64,000 nucleotides of DNA from Euprymna scolopes (taxonomy: Eukaryota), in NCBI GenBank assembly GCA_053919585.1, contig CM132807.1; one strand, given 5' to 3'. Below, piece by piece: positions 12,428-40,090 of the stretch. Below the pieces are notes generated by a model. That model saw nothing but the letters and a program-made list of their open reading frames with translations, had not been told where the DNA came from and did not search any database. Numbering within the stretch: the stretch's first letter is position 1; each line of letters starts with the position of its first letter. Both the position numbers and the translations under genes were made by a program.

Positions 12428-12868
12428 TGTGGAAAAAATATAAGTTACTGGTTGCTCAGGAGAGAGGGGAGTATGTGCACTTACCTTGTTACTAACCAAA
12501 AGAGTTGTTGTTTCCTAGAAGCGTTATAAAGCTTTACCTTGGTCATGTGATGGTGATCACATGACCTTTTCAGACTTATAAAGGGAGGTAATAAAACTCT
12601 AGGGGGAGGTTACAATTTCAGTTGTATTTACAAATTTGCTGCTGAAGGTAACAATTTCAGTTGTATTCACCAATTTGCTGCTGATGGTTACAATTTCAGT
12701 GGTGTTTACTTTTGCTGATGATACTGATGATTACATTGATTACTTATTTTGTTAACTGACTGTCACGTCGCGGAAGAGGCAATTCTTTCGCAACTCTAAA
12801 GGTGAGTGTATCTTGCTTCCTTCTCGACTGAGCAGTCTTATTACTTCTTGGAAATTAAATTTTCCACA
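12428..12868 (+). repeat. 3' LTR of BEL/Pao family A
   Basis: Direct repeat of 6528-6970 with TG...CA ends. Confidence 0.97.
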
Positions 12869-20959: not shown

Positions 20960-22235
20960 GATTGATGATTACAAGATCTTTTCAGACGAGCGCCAATCCC
21001 TCCGACACGAAAATGACTTATTTAGTCCTGCCCGCAAATTCACACGCTCAAGCAGACATGACACCACAGAAGGCCATTGGTATGCATATATATATATATA
21101 TATATGTACGCATATATACATATACACACATAGGTACACATGCAAACAAACATATCTATGAACACATACGTATATATACTTTCATACACAATACATAATA
21201 CACACACATATACATACATATACATACACTTACGCACATGCATACACCAACATATGCATGCATACACATATATACACAAATATACAAACACAACCACACA
21301 TATACATACATATACACATGCAAACACGCACACATATGCACATATATACATACACATACATTTACANNNNNNNNNNNNNNNNNNNNNNNNNNNNNNNNNN
21401 NNNNNNNNNNNNNNNNNNNNNNNNNNNNNNNNNNNNNNNNNNNNNNNNNNNNNNNNNNNNNNNNNNNNNNNNNNNNNNNNNNNNNNNNNNNNNNNNNNNN
21501 NNNNNNNNNNNNNNNNNNNNNNNNNNNNNNCACAAACGTATGTAAATATATAAGCATACATACATACATACATATGATGATTGCAACGTCTTCTCAGACG
21601 AGTGCCACTCCCTCAGTCACTGAAGGGTCATAAGCCCGAAAATAACCTTCGTTTTTTTTAGTCCTGCCAGCGAATTCACAGGCTCAAGCAGACATGACAT
21701 TGAAGACGGTCCTTGGTATACATACAGATATTTACACATACACACAAACATACACATACATACCCATGAACATACACACATGCACACATCCATACATGCA
21801 TACACACAACACATATAACACATACATACAAACATATACATACACACATGCACACACATATACATATATAGTCATACACATATATACTACCATATACAAA
21901 TACATACATACATATACATATATATTTACATACATATACGGACACATGTATGCACATATACATGCATACACATAAAGTTACCTACATATACGTACGCATA
22001 CATATATATGCACATATACACATACATATATATGCATATACACATATACATACACACAAATATATATATATATACCTATATACATGCAAACCCACATAAA
22101 CATGTATACACAATAAATAAATACATACATAGATACATACATATACAAATAGGTATACATACACATACATACACTAGTAGATATATTAACATACATGCAT
22201 ACATACACACATACGTATGCATATGATGATTGCAG
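20960..22235. repeat. Complex tandem: ~130-bp conserved core alternating with CA/TA-rich low-complexity DNA
   Basis: The core GATGATT.CAA..TCTT.TCAGACGAG.GCCA.TCCCTC...TAGTCCTGCC.GC.AATTCACA.GCTCAAGCAGACATGACA occurs at about 20965 and about 21576, and its start recurs at about 22224. Confidence 0.75.
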
Positions 22236-23529: not shown

Positions 23530-23788
23530 ATTTATAAGACCCGATATGTGGCTAATAAGTCTCAGGATGAGTTTCTTTCATATTGTATTCTTCTTTGTTG
23601 TGTTTTTTGCAGCATCTTATGTTGTCTATGCTGTGGTCCAGGAAGTTGTACTTAATTGCTATTGTGTGCTGTGCGGATTTTTCCCTGTTTGCTTGTTTGT
23701 GGTTTTTGAATCGTAGGCGGAACTCTCGGACTGTTTGGTCCACGTAGTTACCATTTTTGCACCTGGTGCAATATATTATGAAGAATAC
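23530..23788 (-). mobile_element. Penelope-like element, GIY-YIG endonuclease fragment (downstream half, split by BEL family B)
   Basis: VFFIIYCTRCKNGNYVDQTVREFRLRFKNHK is a degenerate GIY-YIG (IY..C..C...YVG.T...LR.RF..H). It joins in frame to 30345-30570 once the BEL insertion is removed. Confidence 0.75.
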
Positions 23789-24162
23789 TATGAGAATTTT
23801 CAATTGGTTGACTTGCCGACGGTAGGTCGGTGGGGAAGAAAGGAGTGCTGGTAGCTGTAACCAACAAGGCTAGTGGTCCGTTAATCAAAGAACCTGAGTG
23901 CCTATTCCTTACAAGTTAAATAGACATTTCAGTCACGCGTGAATCTCGTTGACTGAGAGTTGGAGTAGATAAAAGGGGTGGCCGCTATACTGTTTTTGTT
24001 GTAGTTGTTGCTGTCTTTTAGACAAATTACACTTCGACCATCGTTACCTATTTGTTACTTTTACGAGGAAAGACTAATTGTAAGCAACATCGACATTTCA
24101 TTGCAAGACTTAAACCGTCTTTTCTTCTCCCCCCCATACTTGTCGGTATGCTAATTCCGACA
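23789..24162 (+). repeat. 5' LTR of BEL/Pao family B
   Basis: Direct repeat of 29974-30344. It starts TATGAGAATT (the 3' copy starts TGTGAGAATT) and ends AATTCCGACA. Confidence 0.95.
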
Positions 24163-24164
24163 CA

Positions 24165-24176
24165 TTGCAACGAAAT
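24165..24176 (+). promoter_or_regulatory. Non-tRNA primer-binding site TTGCAACGAAAT, complementary to own LTR (putative self-priming)
   Basis: Lies 2 nt after the LTR end. It is the exact reverse complement of ATTTCGTTGCAA in the 3' LTR (30277-30288). The 5' LTR copy at 24095-24106 has one transition. Confidence 0.8.
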
Positions 24177-24375
24177 TACTTTATTTTATTTGGAGGAGGG
24201 TCTTTTTTCTTTATCCGCGTCAGCAACGCACGTGCTTTTATAAAACTGTAATGGGCGTCACCTTATGAAACAAAGTGTAACTGATTATTTTCCGGTTTAA
24301 AATACATACATTGGAACGAACTTGATTTCTCCTCTTTGGAGTTGGATTATTCTAGTGTACAACGGAATTCATAAC

Positions 24376-27300
24376 ATGGATGAGGCAGTCTCAATGGAGG
24401 ACCTGAAGCTGAAACAAGAACTTCTTGAAAGAAAAATACTAACTACACTGGAAGGATAAGTAAAGGAAGAGAAGAGTTATTAAGAAGTGATTTCTCTATT
24501 TAAGGTAGAAATAGAGGACTGGTTGGAAGAGCTTGAGGGCGTTTCCTTTGACATGGAGGGACACTTGGCTCCAAGAGGAGAAGCAGAAGCATTGGCTAGC
24601 TTAAGTCTAGCTTCATTTCGCTTTAAATATGGAGCGAGACAGCGTTTAAGTTCTCTGCGTAAAGCTGACCAGAGTGAACACCCAGCAGTCACCTCGATGG
24701 AAGATGTTGACTCAATCTCTAGTCATGGGAAACCGGTTACTCCAGAAAATGAGAGATCGCCATCCTACAAACCAACAACCCATTATTCATTTTCTGTGGA
24801 GCCATTTAAAATAAAGTTGAAGGGGCCACGCTTTGATGGGAAGGACTTCGACACCAACTAGAGGAGCTTCAAGGACTTCTTGACAAAGTTCGAAAATTGT
24901 GCCAGGTCCATAACATCACTCAGTGAAAGACTATATTTTTTGAGGTGCTCCTTGGAAGGTAGGCCCCTCCAACTTATAAATCATCTCTCCCCCTCTGAAG
25001 ATATTTACGGTATGGCCCTTAAGCAATTAAAGGACCAATATTTGGACGGGGAGGAGACAAGAGGTGAAATAATTAAGCAAATATTAGATTTCCAGTTAGA
25101 TAATCACAAAAAACTTTAAGGATTAAAACATTTTATAATAAAGACCCATGCGGATATGTGGGACCTAAGGGCCTCGTATAGTTGTGACTTATATGACGAT
25201 AAGTCAGCTGGAGCAATAATAATAGCACAAGTAAATGGAGAACTCTTACGAATCTCTGGGACTACCTACCCGACATTTTCCACACTATTGAAGGAAACAC
25301 CAAGAATTGTGAAACAGATGCTAGTTGCCAGACAGCCGACCAAGGTACTGATGCCCAAACCTAGGCTAAACCTAAGACAGAGGAGACGATCGAAACATCG
25401 TCTCTTAAAACTTTTAATACCGAATTAAGACCCGAGGAAAGATGCGACTTTTGCAAAAGCAATAAACATTTGTCTGAGGACTGTGGCAACTATACGACCC
25501 ATGAAACCAGGACACCCCGGTGTAGAGAGCTACGTCTTTGTTTTCGGTGCCTAAAGAGATCCCACTTGGGGAATATGTGACCATTAAGGACATCAAGAAA
25601 AAGTGTTGTCATATTGCAACTCTAAATGACACATAACTGTTATGTGCTCAACTGTTACGAGTAGTATGCAGGTTGATACCTGTCTACATACAAAAGACGA
25701 TAGTGCTTTCCTTTCTTCCATAATTGAAATAATAGTGCAAAGAGGAGATAAAATGTGAAGATAAACTGCCTGTTAGACACTGGTAGTCAAATAACTTATT
25801 TGGACTTTAATTTTAAAGAAGCTAAATTGTCTCTCCTTCCCAAAGGATAAAATAATGGAAGTAAATACCTTTTTAGGAACAACTCCATAAACCTTTAAGG
25901 AAATCTCGTTGGGATTGAATTTGATGCCAGGCAAAACAAATACTCTTCAGATTCTTGCGACCAAGTTGAACTTGTCTTACAGCCTTGAATGACTTACTCA
26001 GAATCTTGGAAATTTAAAGAATCACAGACTGGCTGCAAAGTTTAATGCAAAGGAGATTTGGTTACTATAGATGTATTACTAGGACTCGAGGCAATCCAGT
26101 ACCTAGAACCTTTCAAGATAGTCCCTTGCATGTATGGAGCAGCATTCGAGACCAAAAAAGGACTAATTCCCTTTGGAAACAGGTGTTCTTTTCTATATAA
26201 ACACCAGATTAAAAACCAAAAAAGAACAGATTAATTATGCAGAGGTGTTTGCGAAAACTCCACCACTTCCATCGCCCAGAATCAACTACGTGATTCACCC
26301 AGAGGAATCCTATCCAGACGCTTTAAAAAATTGGTTTGAAGAGAGTAGTGTCACACGAGGGTTGGAAAACATGTTCAACCTTGAATCTATTGGATAACCC
26401 ATTGACGAGAAATGCTCCACCTTGAATGAAGAGAAGGTTAAGCAGTTTAGAGATTCCGTCACATACAAAGATGGTCTCTATCATGTACAACTTCAGTGGT
26501 ATGAAGATACATTAAAATCGGTACCTTCTAATTACAATGCTGCTATTCGGGTGCTAGAAAATGTTAATAAGGATCTGGAGAAGAAAAACTTGTATAATCA
26601 GTATCTGCAAGTTTTCCAACAACAAGAAGACGAGGATATTATTGAAGAAATAATTGTGCCTCCTGAACAATTTAATATTTATATGTGGATTCCTCATAGG
26701 CCAGTGATAAAACTAACATATCAGAATACTACCAAGGTGAGGCCAGTATTTAATTATTCTTATAAACATAAGGGTCCAGTATCATTGAACGAAGCAGCAT
26801 ATCCTGGAGTGAACCTGATGAGCGACATGTTAAAATTGATGATCCGATTCCAAACAAACCGATATGTCTTGTTGGCTTATATTAGAAAAGCCTTCTGATG
26901 ATTCGTCTGGTATCGGAAACGGATCGTAATCGGTTTTGCTTTTTTCTGACGAAAGGTTAAAAATTGCATTGCTACAGGTAAAAAAACCCTTATTTTTGGC
27001 TTCAATGCAAGCCCTTTTATTGTAAATTATCCATTAAATTTCATGCAGAGAAATTCCTTTTGGATGAATGGTGGGAGGCGCTAAAATCCAGTGTTTATGT
27101 TTACAATCTAGTGAAACCTGCGAATAATGCAGAAAATCTATCTGATTTGTATACCTCTGCGAGAGAGCGTCTGTAGAAGGAAACTTCTAATTTACAGTCT
27201 TGCAATTCCAACTGTGTAACACTCCAAAGGAAAATGGAGGCTGATGGAACGTTATCATGATTCAACTCTGGTTGGGAAAAAGTGCTGGGGTATCAATATG

Positions 27301-29914
27301 ATCCTGTCCAAGATTCTATAAGAGTATCCCCCCCATCATGCGACTTGGAGGCATCAACTAAGAGGAAAATATTATCGGAGACCTCAAAGGTATTTGCTCC
27401 TTTGCCTCTGTATCTACCTGTGACAGTGCGAGGTCGTTTATTGATGAGATAAATATGGAGACAAAAACTGAATTGAGATGATATAGTTCCTCAAGATATG
27501 ATTTCAGTTTGGAGAACGTTGGCAAAAGATTTATCAGCGTTAGAATCTGTATCTTTCCCCAGGAGGGTTATAGATGAAGGAAAGGATACAACATTATTCT
27601 TTTTCTGTGATGCGTCTAAAGCCGCATATGGGTTTGCGGTATATGCCGTACAGGATGGAAATTCATTCTTGGTATTTGCCAAAGCGAAAATGGCTCCTTT
27701 GCAGGGAAAATCCCTCCCAACGTTGGAACTTCTAGCAGTATTTCTAGCACTGAAATGCTTCCCTTTTATAAAAGAGTCCCTAAAGGACATTCCTATAAAA
27801 GGCGTCTATGTAATCACAGATGCTCAGGTAGTGCTGTCTTGGATTTTGGCTGACTTCGTCAAAACGAAAAATGTATTTGTACGGAATAGATTGCAGGACA
27901 TAGGTCAAATGTCTGAGAAAGTTAAATCTGATTTTAACATAAAGATAAACTTTCAGTACACTTCAACAGATGACAACCCGGCCGAGTACATAACCAGAGG
28001 TTTGACTATCAAGAAATTTAAGGAAAAAGTTTTTTCTTTGTTATGAGGGACCGAAATGGATAAGGCAAGAAGAATCCTCCTAGTGCCATCGTGAGTAGGG
28101 TTGCCTTTCTAAAGTTCTAATGGAGCGGATTAGCGCTTCAGTAAATTATGCCGCAGAGAATGAAGTGGCTACATCAGAAGTCAAATTGGAAAAATTCTTC
28201 AGTTCAGGAAAGTTGATCAGTGTAACTTCATTGATATTCAAGTTCATCAACAAGTTAAAAAAGAGGGTGATTGATCCTGAGTTACAAGCAAATGCCTACC
28301 TGATCAAGACAATGCAAAAACAATCCTTTTCAAGGGAGTTGGGTTTTTTGTTGGACCCTGGAGGAAATTGCATGCCTAAACTGGTGAAGAATTTACATCT
28401 CTTTTTGGACTACAAGGTAATTATACGATCGATGGGAAGAATAGGAAAATCGGAATATCACTCATATGTGACCCAAATCCCATTTTATTGGTAAAAGAGC
28501 ATCATCTAACAAGTTTGATTATTCAAGAATATCACCAAAGAAGCCAACACTTAGGTTTGACCACAGCATTAAATGAAATACGATTGGCAGGTTACTGGCT
28601 ATCACAAGGCAGACAGGCTGTTAAAAATGTGGTTAGTACTTGTGTGAAATGTAAACGCTATAAGGCCGTTTCTTGTGCAATACCAAATTCGACCAACTTA
28701 CCAGCCCCTCGGGTGAATTTTGTCAGGCCCTGTCTACATACCGGTGTGGATTTTACCAAACATATCTATGTTAAAGGACAAGAGAACGACTATAAAATGT
28801 ACATTCTTCTATTTACATGTATGAGTATTAGGGCTGTACATTTGTAACTGGTTCAGGATATGACTGTGAAATCATTTATTCAAGAATTCATTAGGTTTCC
28901 GAACGTGAATGGAATCCCTACACACCTCTATTCGGATAATGCTCGCACATTTAACGCTGCTGCCAGAATCATTAACCGGGGCATGATAGCCGATTAATTC
29001 AATGAAAGATTAAGCCCATATGACTTAAAACATTGCACAATTTCACTGTTTTCACCTTGGTACGGTGGTAGTTGGGAGAGGTCCATCAAGGCCATAAAAT
29101 CTTGCTTGCATAAATCATTAGGAAGAGGTAAAGTAGACTATTTTGGTCTAATAACAATTTTGTCTGATGTGCATAGGGAAGTAAATAGCCACCCCCTGAC
29201 ATATAGGAGCTCTGATGATGCTAATCTGAATGTCTTAACCTCTAACTCTTTCATGAATGCGAACGTTGGTCAGGGAATAATAAAGCGGTTGGAAAACCAG
29301 GACCAGGAAACGATCGATCCTGTTAGTCGAAGTGACTTGATTCAAACCCTGCGTTCCCGGGAAGAAAGCCTGACTTAATTTAGAAAAGTTTGGAATAAGG
29401 ACCATATGTTGAGTCTCAGAGAAAGATCAAGGAGCTTGGCTGGTTGTTCTTTTGAAGATAAAGTAAAACCAGGGGATATAGTGTTCATAAAAACCCTCTG
29501 AAAACAAGGCCTTTGTGGTTCCTAGGTGAAGTTCTGCAGCTAATCCAAGGAAGTGATGAATTGGTGCGCATGGTGAAGGTGAGGAAAGGGAATGGAGCTA
29601 TAGACACATACTCTATCAAGCATCTCTTTTCCTGGAAATCACTCAACAGCCTGGAGAACCTGACCCGATAGGCACGAGTTTACAGAATATAAGCCAGGAC
29701 CCTCAACGGAGAGAGTATTATAATTTGGATCTGTCCTAGCTGTAACAGACCTGAAGGTACCAGACCTATGATAAACTGCGTTAGATGCAATGACTGGTTT
29801 CACTTCAGCTGTGTGGGTCTAACTGAAGCACCACCAGAAGATGGACAATGGTTCAGTCCGACTTGCAACATTCAAGGTGTTGTAACTGTTAGACCCAGTT
29901 TATCAGGAGTCTAA
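24376..29914 (+). pseudogene. gag-pol: BEL/Pao gag-pol polyprotein of family B with C-terminal PHD finger (many stops and frameshifts)
   Basis: ATG at 24376 sits in the same TAACATGGAT context as family A. Successive ORF fragments 24487-29378 match gag, PR, RT, RH and IN. The PHD frame stops at 29912-29914. Confidence 0.92.
29726..29866 (+). other. PHD finger (TAF3-like) at the integrase C-terminus, family B
   Basis: Manual translation: WICPSCNRPEGTRPMINCVRCNDWFHFSCVGLTEAPPEDGQWFSPTC (C4HC3, with the 7th Cys changed to Ser, AGT). It is not in the ORF track. Confidence 0.9.
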
Positions 29915-29973
29915 ACAAACTGTTTTATTCTCTTATAGATTTTTTTTCTTTTGTGGGGAATGTGTGGGGAATG

Positions 29974-30344
29974 TGTGAGAATTTTCAATTGGTTGACTTG
30001 CCGAGGGTAGGTCGGTGGAGAAGAAAGGAGTGCTGATAGATGTGACCAACAAGGCCGGTGGTCCGTTTATCAAAAACCTGAGTGCCCATTCCTTACAAGT
30101 TAAATAGACATTTCAGTCACGCGTGAAACTCGCTGACTGAGAGTTGGAGTAGATAAAAAGGGGTGGCCGCTCTACTGTTGTTGTAGTTGTTGCTGTCTTT
30201 TAGACAAATTACACTTCGACCATCGTTACCCATTTGTTACTTTTACAAGGGAAGACTGCTTGTAAGCAACATCGACATTTCGTTGCAAGACTTAAACCGT
30301 CTTTTCTTCTCCCCCCCCTACTCGTCGGTATGCTAATTCCGCCA
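29974..30344 (+). repeat. 3' LTR of BEL/Pao family B
   Basis: Direct repeat of 23789-24162, preceded by the GGGGAATG PPT. Confidence 0.95.
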
Positions 30345-30575
30345 ATACGCAGGTGAACGGGGAGAGTTTTACTTGAAGATTTGTTCTTGGAAGTGTGAAT
30401 TTGTCGTCAGTATTAATGTGTTTGCACACTTAACATATGGGTTATTTGTAGTAAAATACAATTGGTACGCGTGTGGATGATTTGTTGCGTTTGGATGTAA
30501 GTAGATTAACCCTGCTCAAATTTTCTGATTTCTGAATTAATGTGTTTATTATTTTAAAGGGGTAATTTCTATGAA
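30345..30575 (-). mobile_element. Penelope-like element fragment (RT C-terminus and linker, upstream half)
   Basis: The minus strand reads RNYPFKIINT... and C*VCKHINTDDKFTLPRTNLQVKLSPFTCV, which continues into FFIIYCTRC at 23788. Confidence 0.7.
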
Positions 30576-30971: not shown

Positions 30972-32564
30972 ATGTCGCTTAGCAACAATGGCAGACCAAC
31001 GAGCGGTGAAAATTTTACTGTTGGTATATCTGTACGTGATGTTGCCAAGCTAATCAAAAACCTTGATTCCAGTAAAGCAACTGGCCCTGATGGTATTCCA
31101 ATTATAGTACTCAAAAAACTTCAACCTGAACTAGCGCCCATACTTACAAAACTGTTTAAACGTTGTCTTAAGGAGAATAGTTTCCCATCTCCCTGGAAAA
31201 TCTCATCAGTATGCCCTGTATTTAAGAATTCAGGTGATCGCTCATCCCCCTCTCAGTACAGGCCAATAAGTCTCCTGTGCGTCATGAGTAAGTTGCTAGA
31301 ATCTGTATTAAATACAGAAGTAATCAAACATCTCAACAAAAATAACCTTCTTAGTGACACTCAATATGGTTTCCGTTCTGCTAGATCTACAGCAGATGTC
31401 CTTACAGTTATATCGCATAGGATTAGCAAATCTCTCGACGGTGGCAATCTTTCTAGGGCAATTGCTCTTGACATATCTAAAGCCTTTGATAGGGTATGGC
31501 ATAAAGGTTTACTTCATAAGATCGCTAGCTATGGTATAGCTGGAAAAGTCTTCTCAATTATTAAATCATTTCTTTCTGATAGATTCATAAGAGTAGTAGT
31601 TGAGGGGCAAAAATCAGAAGCTCACAATATTAATGCCGGTGTCCCTCAGGGATCCATCCTGGGCCCAACTCTTTTCCTGATCTACATTAATGATCTTCCA
31701 AATCATATCCTTACATCATTTGTAGACATTTATGCTGACGACACTACCATTTATGGTACCACATCTAAGACAGTAAACGAGCAAGTTCTCTCCAATTCTC
31801 TCTCCTCTGATCTTGAGCACGTAGTACAATGGGGAAAGGAGTGGCTGGTTACTTTTAATGCATCTAAAACCAAGCTTCTCTCTTTACATCATCAACATTC
31901 TAATCCACATTTGTCATCAATTGAAATGAATGGCTCTCGTCTTCAGGAGGCCTCAAGTTTTGACAAGCTTCTGGGCTTGACCATTACTCCTGATCTTAAA
32001 TGGAACACGTATATCAAATCTGTTGCCAAGGCCGCTGGAAAAATGGTGGGATCTTTCTATCGATCCAGTAAATATCTCACTGCTGATGCTATTCTCTATC
32101 TATATAAGAGCCAGGTACGTCCAAGGATGGAATACTGTTGCCACATCTGGGCAGGAGCTGCTAGTAAGAACTTGTCCTGCCTTGATAGAGTTCAAAATAG
32201 ACTTCGTAGCCTCGTAGGAGATGTCCTTTTCTCCTCCTTGCAACCTCTATCTCACAGAAGAGATGTTGCGAGTTTGTCTCTGATGTATCGTTATTTTCAT
32301 GGAAAGTGTTCAACTGAGCTTCAATCTATGGTCCCCCCTCGCCAAACTTTCACAAGAAACACTCGTCTAGCTGTAAACACTATCAATAATTTCCCCCACT
32401 CTTTATCTGTGCCTAAACCTAAACGTAGATTCCATGAACAAAGCTTCTTTCTTAGAACTGCACGCCTGTGGAATTGTCTTCCGTTTTCCTGCTTTCCGGC
32501 TGACTACAATATGGTTTTGTTCAAGTCTAAAGTAAATAAGTTCTTGATGAGCCGTTCAATATAA
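30972..32564 (+). CDS. Non-LTR retrotransposon reverse transcriptase (CR1/L2-group LINE ORF2, 5'-truncated, uninterrupted)
   Basis: 530-aa ORF containing KATGPDGIP, YRPISLL, QYGFR, ALDISKAFDRVWH, GVPQGSILGP, YADD and FNASKT. There is no endonuclease domain. The first ~17 codons probably derive from flanking DNA. Confidence 0.95.
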   Translation: MSLSNNGRPTSGENFTVGISVRDVAKLIKNLDSSKATGPDGIPIIVLKKLQPELAPILTKLFKRCLKENSFPSPWKISSVCPVFKNSGDRSSPSQYRPISLLCVMSKLLESVLNTEVIKHLNKNNLLSDTQYGFRSARSTADVLTVISHRISKSLDGGNLSRAIALDISKAFDRVWHKGLLHKIASYGIAGKVFSIIKSFLSDRFIRVVVEGQKSEAHNINAGVPQGSILGPTLFLIYINDLPNHILTSFVDIYADDTTIYGTTSKTVNEQVLSNSLSSDLEHVVQWGKEWLVTFNASKTKLLSLHHQHSNPHLSSIEMNGSRLQEASSFDKLLGLTITPDLKWNTYIKSVAKAAGKMVGSFYRSSKYLTADAILYLYKSQVRPRMEYCCHIWAGAASKNLSCLDRVQNRLRSLVGDVLFSSLQPLSHRRDVASLSLMYRYFHGKCSTELQSMVPPRQTFTRNTRLAVNTINNFPHSLSVPKPKRRFHEQSFFLRTARLWNCLPFSCFPADYNMVLFKSKVNKFLMSRSI

Positions 32565-32710
32565 GTTATTAAATTTACCAAATTTTCATTACTAATGATT
32601 ACTATATTGACCAACTTCTACTGTACACTCTTTAACCCTTATCCTTGAGTGGCCTCTGGGCCTTGATAATGTGGTGATGCCTTTGTAAAAAAAAAAAAAA
32701 AAAAAAAAAA
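31023..32710 (+). mobile_element. 5'-truncated LINE with 3' UTR and poly(A) tail
   Basis: RT ORF, about 120-nt 3' UTR and an A24 tail at 32687-32710. The 5' boundary is approximate. Confidence 0.9.
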
Positions 32711-39109: not shown

Positions 39110-40090
39110 GTGAGTTCTCTCAGATTCTCTCTCTTCTAATCTTGTGCACGTTGTACAATGTGAAAAGGGGTTGTATATATTTGCTTCCGCACTGAACAAA
39201 TAAGGCACAAGGGCGTTTTTGTACAATGTGAAAAGAGGTGGTTTGTTACAGTTAATGCATCTAAAACCAAGCTTTTATCTTTACACCATCAACGCTCTGA
39301 TTCCCATCTGACATCAATTGAAATGAATGGCTCTCGTCTTGGGGAGGCCTCATGTTTTAACAATCATCTGTGCTGGACCTTTACTCTTGATCTGAAATGG
39401 AAAATGTGCATCAAATATGTTGCCAAAGCCGCTGGAAAAATGGTCGGATTCTTTTATCGATCCAGTAGATATCTCACTGCTGATGCAATTCTCTATCTAA
39501 AGGAGAGCCAAATTCGTCCAAGGATGGAGTACTGTTGCCAGATCAGGGACGGAGCAGCTAGAATGATTTTATCCTGCCTTGACAGAATTCAAAATAGACT
39601 TCGCAGCCTCATAAATGATGTCCTTTTTTTTTCGCTGCAGCCTCTTTCTCACAGAAGAGATATTACGAGTTTGTCGCTGTTTTATCGTTATCTTTGTGGC
39701 AAGTGCTCGACTTAGCTTCGATTTATGGTATCCCTCGCCAAACTTTCACAAGAAACACACGTCTAGCTGAAAACACTATCAATAATTTATCCCACTCTTT
39801 ATCTGTGCCTAAACATAAACGTCGACTCCATGAAAAAAACTTCTTTCTTAGAACTGCGCGCCTGTGTAAATGTCTTCCGCTTTCCATGCTTTCAAACTGA
39901 CTACAATATGGTTTTCTTCAAGTCCAACGTAAACTATACTTGATAAGCCGTTCCCCTTAAGTTAACAAATTTACTGAATTTCCATTACTGACAATTACTA
40001 TATTGCCCAGTAAACTACTGGGCGCTCTTTAACTCTTATTCACGAGTGAGACCAGTTCTTTGATAAGTGGTGATGTCTATGTTAAAAAAA
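39110..40090 (+). mobile_element. Older, decayed copy of the same LINE family (3' part)
   Basis: Colinear with about 31785-32690 (MNGSRL.EAS, RPRMEYCC, LQPLSHRRD, shared 3' UTR, short A tail), with frameshifts. Confidence 0.92.

Follow-up and report, generated by a model that had tools for sequence, protein, structure and literature searches.

Self-priming of reverse transcription is established for the retrotransposon Tf1 of fission yeast, whose primer is the first 11 nt of its own mRNA, cut by RNase H (PMC4600332). The same strategy has been proposed for Tj1 and for the Tf1/Sushi, Tcn1 and TAR elements (PMC4600332, PMC6317226, PMC6934838). The BEL/Pao superfamily is described by the ICTV, the international committee in charge of virus taxonomy, as primed by transfer RNA (tRNA), with an 18-nt site for tRNA-Arg or tRNA-Gly (PMC8742986). 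The locus discussed here is a 64,000-nt stretch of contig CM132807.1 from Euprymna scolopes, referred to as the window, which consists of AT-rich eukaryotic DNA (27-46% GC, 11 runs of N) and contains two complete long terminal repeat (LTR) elements, families A and B. Both belong to BEL/Pao, and from their sequences we consider it probable that, wherever the 5' end of the RNA lies, minus-strand synthesis was primed by the element's own RNA, in the manner of Tf1, and not by a host tRNA.

Putative primer sites and their LTR partners in families A and B

The first-pass annotation had proposed that the 5' LTR of family B is followed by two nucleotides, CA, and then by a site complementary to the interior of the LTR itself. 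Direct reading bears out both the coordinates and the pairing. The primer-binding site (PBS), TTGCAACGAAAT, pairs at 12/12 positions with the segment in the 3' LTR, of which it is the exact reverse complement, and at 11/12 positions with the segment in the 5' LTR. The parts of the element are as follows.

23785-23788 (+): left copy of the target-site duplication ATAC, with the right copy at 30345-30348; read directly, the two copies flanking LTRs of the form T(A/G)TGAG...CCG(A/C)CA
23789-24162 (+): 5' LTR, 374 nt; blastn against the 3' LTR, 93% identity
24095-24106 (+): putative self-primer segment ATTTCATTGCAA in the 5' LTR, 11/12 pairs with the PBS
24141-24162 (+): predicted hairpin comprising the final 22 nt of the LTR; RNA fold, directly 5' of the spacer and PBS, in a U5-IR-like position
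24163-24164 (+): spacer of 2 nt, CA, separating the PBS from the LTR end; direct reading
24165-24176 (+): self-complementary PBS TTGCAACGAAAT; direct reading
24177-29965 (+): leader and degenerate gag-pol with many stops and frameshifts; Pfam and tblastn
29966-29973 (+): polypurine-tract region GGGGAATG adjoining the 3' LTR; direct reading
29974-30344 (+): 3' LTR, 371 nt; blastn against the 5' LTR
30277-30288 (+): putative self-primer segment ATTTCGTTGCAA in the 3' LTR, 12/12 pairs with the PBS

By direct reading the 5' LTR terminates in TTCCGACA, with ...CCGACA ending at 24162, and ATTTCATTGCAA is preceded by CA, giving the initiator-like sequence YA(+1)TTY. The segment stops 56 nt short of the LTR end in both LTRs, and these two segments are the only complements of the PBS with one mismatch or fewer anywhere in the window. 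The single mismatch in the 5' copy is a G>A change at 24100 that lies within a CpG (CpG>CpA), so it is expected as post-insertion decay of the commonest kind; the PBS retains the C that paired with the original G. At the other end of the element, GGGGAATGTG is duplicated immediately upstream of the polypurine-tract region.

Family A lies upstream in the window and has the following parts.

6522-6970 (+): 5' LTR, starting at 6522 if the target duplication is GAAT and at 6528 by homology with family B
6885-6895 (+): putative self-primer segment TTCTTTCGCAA, with a second copy at 12783-12793 in the 3' LTR; direct reading
6973-6983 (+): PBS TTGCGAAAGAA, 2 nt (TA) past the LTR end at 6970
12420-12427 (+): polypurine tract GGGGAA(TG), directly before the 3' LTR
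12426/12428-12868 (+): 3' LTR; blastn against the 5' LTR

The LTR pair of family A is 96% identical, and its target duplication, GAAT, is uncertain. The arrangement is that of B in an LTR of unrelated sequence: TTGCGAAAGAA pairs at 11/11 positions with the element's own LTR, the partner being located 75 nt before the LTR end. The gag ATG is at 6998, 14 nt past the PBS, and the whole distance from LTR to ATG is 27 nt, so that there is no room for another primer site. Four one-mismatch matches to the primer segment of A elsewhere in the window (1918, 16642, 54949 and 62837) were set aside as chance, no LTR context being seen at the three that were read. Between the TATA-like box of the family A LTR and its primer segment, at 6708-6810, a 39-nt unit is repeated in tandem 2.6 times (90% matches). 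Tandem repeats have also been described in the Pao LTR; the 39-nt units are missing from the much shorter LTR of the third family introduced below.

It had also been suggested that the 2-nt spacer mirrors a TG between the polypurine tract and the 3' LTR. This holds in family B (GGGGAA TG / TGTGAG, with the duplication ATAC). In family A the only matching flank duplication, GAAT, would make TG the first bases of the LTR, and the mirror argument is therefore not secure.

Families A and B are BEL/Pao elements and not Ty3/gypsy elements. Pfam identifies a DUF1759 Gag in A and both the Pao-specific Peptidase_A17 and Integrase_H2C2 in A and B, homologues carry Pao annotation, and no integrase chromodomain was found in either by Pfam. 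In the reverse transcriptase (RT) tree A and B are sisters (96/92) and fall inside a BEL/Pao clade together with the loci L001-L003 (100/97). Family B is homologous to A over its whole length, as judged by tblastn of pieces of A, with 27-75% amino acid identity per segment and 33-56% apart from two short or weak segments. Family A is moderately broken, and the RT segment of B alone contains 4 stops; comparisons involving broken genes used the separate pieces, or X in place of stops. Among named Gag homologues of A the best, at 47%, is from the cuttlefish Acanthosepion pharaonis, which by itself makes a mollusc host, perhaps a cephalopod, probable.

Covariation among three families and tRNA-type controls

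A third family, L082, is represented on a Logan contig and has a Gag that is 59% identical to that of A, with the same N-terminus. Its LTR ends in ...CTCAACA at 217, followed by the spacer TT and the site TTGTGAAAAA(G) at 220-230. The partner, TTTTTCACAA, occupies 130-139 and stops 78 nt short of the LTR end; it forms 10 pairs with the site plus one G-U. The loci L084-L086 belong to the same family; the site is identical in L084 and L085, and no contig of the three extends to the primer segment. A further Logan locus, L083, is 87% identical to B at 24310-25286 on a contig that begins downstream of the PBS, and the IMG/VR scan returned no relatives.

When the three families are aligned with MAFFT, their primer segments occupy identical columns and their LTR ends share an A(T)TTTC..ACA motif. 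The complementary segment thus occupies a homologous position in the three families, and the 2-nt spacer that the first-pass annotation described in B extends to all three, the site beginning 2 nt past the LTR end in each (TA in A, CA in B, TT in L082). In an end-anchored alignment, 91.7% of cells are in standard pairs, a figure that drops to 41-56% once the partner is displaced by 1-3 columns. Out of 11-12 pairs, 4 have changed on both strands, or 5 when B is represented by its undecayed 3' LTR copy, and the covariation values were matched by at most 3/500 shuffles. Retention of pairing through changes on both strands, originally noted between A and B, therefore continues to hold with L082 added. 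Pairing has been kept by compensatory change among the three families, and the direction of this result is clear on a small sample of three sequences. One part of the earlier description did not survive the comparison, namely that GCAA/TTGC at the primer junction is invariant: L082 has ...CACAA/TTGTG, so that only CAA/TTG is common to the three families, and the distant element L066, described below, ends in ...GTAT.

In the standard scheme of reverse transcription, plus-strand synthesis copies the primer and so regenerates the site. A self-primer would be re-copied into the site by the plus strand in each cycle, primer and site would be re-matched every time, and co-variation would follow. 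The earlier argument that a tRNA primer would not force the interior of the LTR to co-vary with the PBS is sound.

The chance expectation of the pairing was estimated in two ways. The LTRs were shuffled 20000 times and scored for a complement of the observed length or longer at any offset from 0 to 10; 50/20000 shuffles reached the observed length for A and 2/20000 for B (at least 12 nt). From base composition, the expectation at the single observed offset is 1.6e-4 for A and 3.4e-5 for B. Over A, B and L082 the chance expectation per family is 3e-5 to 1e-3, and the product of the three is ~5e-12.

Signs of a conventional primer were also sought. In none of A, B and L082 is the LTR followed by TGG, the mark of a site for a tRNA 3' end. 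The 64-kb window contains no tRNA gene, Rfam gave no match when the LTR-leader regions of A and B were scanned, and a single tRNA-like match turned up across the window and all loci examined. For comparison, a metagenome scan with RT alignment supplied 80 BEL/Pao loci, of which 27 elements with clean LTR pairs served as controls. All 27 have a TGG-type site 0-5 nt past a ...CA LTR end, which in most of them is TGGTCCTTCGAGCC, and none (0/27) has a complement of at least 7 nt to its own LTR. The helix in A, B and L082 sits exactly where these controls carry their tRNA site, and in the RT tree the tRNA-type controls form their own clade. The scan also recovered dozens of very young BEL/Pao copies on WLWD01 contigs (L011-L079), with LTR pairs 98-100% identical and 5-bp duplications. 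Several of these families share the one site TGGTCCTTCGAGCC, and the contigs, labelled as metagenome, are evidently from an animal genome.

One element outside the clade of A and B has a comparable arrangement. L066 (Ga0209562_1001061, 1685-7951), a distantly related BEL/Pao element that looks intact, has two identical LTRs of 177 nt, a single gag-pol open reading frame (ORF) of 1845 amino acids and a 5-bp target duplication, ATGAC. The distance from LTR to ATG is 25 nt and contains no TGG. A 10-nt self-complement begins 3 nt past the LTR; its partner lies 62 nt before the LTR end, and an AATAAA is found 13 nt downstream of the partner segment. L066 falls in a different major clade of the RT tree, and on its sequence it may be a second, independent origin of self-priming in BEL/Pao.

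A candidate priming scheme and competing explanations

In the scheme that we favor, an LTR segment of 11-12 nt in the genomic RNA (AUUUCGUUGCAA in B, UUCUUUCGCAA in A) would fold back on the site 2 nt past the LTR. The RNA would then be cut at the 3' end of the segment, after ...CAA, and the new 3'-OH would be extended across the 58 nt (B) or 77 nt (A) that separate the partners, giving a short strong-stop DNA that would be transferred to the same region of the 3' LTR copy. The scheme requires that the sequence immediately 3' of ...CAA also occur at the RNA's 3' end, and it would be simplest if the RNA began at the primer segment. We infer the fold-back in vivo, the cut, the enzyme responsible (by analogy with Tf1, the RNase H of RT) and a transcript start at or next to the primer.

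Predicted RNA structures support the fold-back. The primer-site helix closes the minimum-energy fold in A (-27.5 kcal/mol, z -3.3), in B (-17.3 kcal/mol, z -4.7) and in L082 (z -1.5). Directly 5' of the site, the last bases of the LTR are predicted to form a hairpin in each family (6952-6967 in A, 24141-24162 in B, ~200-216 in L082), with differing sequences in what are three sequences only. A U5-IR stem-loop is reportedly required for Tf1 (Lin and Levin 1998, cited in PMC5443660), and the modeled hairpins would occupy the position of that stem-loop. Candidate transcription signals are also present near the segment. In A, B and L082 the 5' edge of the duplex coincides exactly with the YA(+1)TTY initiator-like motif, and an AT-rich box lies at about -45 to -27 in all three; together these are hints, at the level of sequence motifs, of a transcript start at the primer segment. 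In L066, the poly(A) signal downstream of the segment favors an RNA that starts at the primer. In A (AAG|GTGAGT, 6901-6909, also in the 3' LTR) and L082 (AAG|GTAAGT, 143-151) the primer segment is followed, after 5-8 nt, by a sequence resembling a consensus 5' splice donor. It is kept between these two families and absent in B, and could be a real donor in R/U5 or a coincidence.

Several observations weigh against self-priming as outlined. All three families have conserved a TATA-like box, located 64-205 nt upstream of the primer segment, as listed here.

Family A: TATAAAGGG at 6679 (region 6679-6696)
Family B: GATAAAAGGGG at 23970 (23968-23980)
L082: ATTAAAAGCC at 36 (34-45)

In family A this box is followed immediately by an AATAAA at 6691, and neither B nor L082 has a canonical AATAAA or ATTAAA downstream of the primer segment. 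If the TATA-like box sets the start of transcription and the AATAAA is used, the primer would be internal or even in U5, and a Tf1-like scheme would have to be modified or would fail. The closest readable intact relatives, L002 and L003, have no LTR pair on their contigs, and their LTR ends could not be placed. L002, with LTR ends not located, shows no inverted match of at least 8 nt, and L003 has an 11-pair match between 229-239 and 372-382, 13 nt before the ATG, in sequence of 25% GC that offers equally good decoys. Finally, both window copies are old and broken, so that function has to be read from relics, and the support comes from three families of one clade and one distant candidate, L066.

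The alternative that survives best is itself a variant of self-priming, and whatever probability it has is included in that given above to self-priming as a whole. Transcription would start at the upstream TATA-like box, the primer would be a segment 64-176 nt inside the RNA, and either a long 5' fragment or two cuts would be needed. The preservation of that box in A, B and L082, at a good distance upstream of the segment, speaks for this version, and the sharp end of the complementarity at 11-12 nt is accommodated under either start site. Going by the standard scheme, however, a long unmodified RNA primer would provide no defined stop for plus-strand strong-stop DNA and would thus leave a non-matching tail at the second transfer, and the initiator-like motif and AT-rich box accompany the duplex in 3/3 families. 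We regard an internal primer as unlikely. Which of the two AT-rich signals, the TATA-like box or the primer-proximal box, acts as promoter decides whether the primer is the 5' end of the RNA.

A second alternative accepts the pairing and gives it another task. U5-leader and cyclisation helices exist in retroviruses and in Ty1, and the LTR-leader helix could likewise be a long-range RNA structure serving packaging, dimerisation, genome circularisation or control of gag translation, with something else acting as primer. Folding does predict a stable helix that closes the structure and is flanked by conserved hairpins, and in A the helix ends 14 nt before the gag ATG. A role in translation would not be common to both window elements, however, as the gag start of B is ~215 nt from the PBS helix. 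The leaders also offer no other LTR-adjacent primer site, given the missing TGG and the short LTR-to-ATG distance in A, and the helix lies at exactly the position of the tRNA site in the 27 controls. We judge a purely structural role to be improbable.

Priming by a host small RNA, such as the internal part or half of a tRNA, as copia uses, or some other RNA, with the LTR complement being coincidental, is more doubtful still. Half-tRNA priming exists in Ty1/copia lineages (PMC6317226), but three different sites are each matched by their own LTR at an aligned position, for which the chance product given above is vanishingly small, and under this explanation the LTR would not change in step with the site. 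That the matches are chance inverted repeats without function in dead elements is scarcely credible: both window copies are degenerate, AT-rich sequence gives short inverted matches and a 12-nt match of B's AT-rich leader does occur elsewhere in the window at another offset, but the shuffle and composition statistics, the recurrence of offset and aligned position, together with compensatory changes, in three families, and the lack of any such match in 27/27 controls all argue against it.

Window context and comparison with known systems

Beyond the primer region, both window elements carry a PHD finger (PF00628, E 7e-9), PHD-like in the case of B, after the integrase at the C-terminal end of pol (11879-12307 in A, ~29567-29866 in B). 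A weak PHD match is also present in a neighboring gene of a close ENA relative, and the intact BEL/Pao polyproteins of L002, L003 and L066 lack the domain. As the PHD finger stands where chromoviruses have their chromodomain, it may, by analogy, be a chromatin-reading targeting module. The rest of the window contains other repeats. Immediately 3' of family B, the interval 30972-32710 is occupied by a non-LTR retrotransposon that has a poly(A) tail at ~32680-32710 and whose 530-aa ORF matches RVT_1 (E 3e-37), and a second, partial 3' copy of it, 84-92% identical, is found 7.4 kb away at 39221-39885. The repeat pair 31824/39221 was considered as an LTR pair and rejected, the two being 3' parts of this non-LTR retrotransposon, of which one bears the poly(A) tail. 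At 21080-22090 there is a low-complexity array of ~1 kb with a periodicity of ~10 nt, surrounding the N run at 21367-21530.

Taken more widely, we lean towards the view that a BEL/Pao clade, probably of molluscs or cephalopods, has swapped tRNA priming for Tf1-like self-priming and carries an integrase with a PHD finger, with L066 perhaps a separate case. The case is unusual because the elements are BEL/Pao. Within the literature searched, self-priming is reported only for Ty3/gypsy (Tf1/Sushi, Tcn1) and Ty1/copia (TAR) elements, and nothing was found that links it to BEL/Pao, in a search whose coverage excludes most subscription journals, so that an earlier report is possible; the BEL/Pao case is apparently new. 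Priming is one of the few steps that define the dependence of a retroelement on its host. If the proposal is correct, a self-primed clade would change the description of BEL/Pao as tRNA-primed, and self-priming would occur in all three LTR-retrotransposon superfamilies, making it either ancestral or easily re-invented. Whether hairpin or self-priming preceded tRNA priming is a question that has been raised before (PMC3601003), and a third superfamily of self-primers would bear on that order. Automated annotation based on the PBS would also be expected to miss such elements systematically, which would explain animal LTR elements that appear siteless in tRNA-based PBS finders. Families A, B and L082 further provide a natural compensatory-mutation series for duplex recognition by RT/RNase H.

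The canonical BEL/Pao elements (Belpaoviridae, Semotivirus) share with the window elements their gene content and order, TG...CA LTRs, target duplications of 4-5 bp and a polypurine tract beside the 3' LTR. The difference lies in the primer site: A, B, L082 and probably L066 are without a tRNA-type site, whereas the 27 controls fit the ICTV description. Among self-primers, the Tf1/Sushi group (sushi-ichi, Maggy, Skippy, Cft-1, Boty), the plant Tcn1 clade and the plant Ty1/copia TAR elements (Houba, Osr-1) resemble the present families in that self-priming is predicted from a site complementary to the LTR (PMC6317226, PMC6934838). Those elements are Ty3/gypsy chromoviruses or Ty1/copia, and none of them is BEL/Pao. 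The closest likeness is to Tf1 and Tf2 of Schizosaccharomyces pombe and Tj1 of S. japonicus, which have an LTR-adjacent site of ~11 nt complementary to their own LTR-derived RNA, no tRNA site and a stem-loop at the end of U5, beside the site (PMC4600332). These three are Ty3/gypsy elements, whereas the window elements are BEL/Pao, with Peptidase_A17 and a DUF1759 Gag, in an animal host, and have a PHD finger in place of a chromodomain in the integrase tail. In Tf1 the primer and its cut have been demonstrated; in the window elements both are proposed from sequence.
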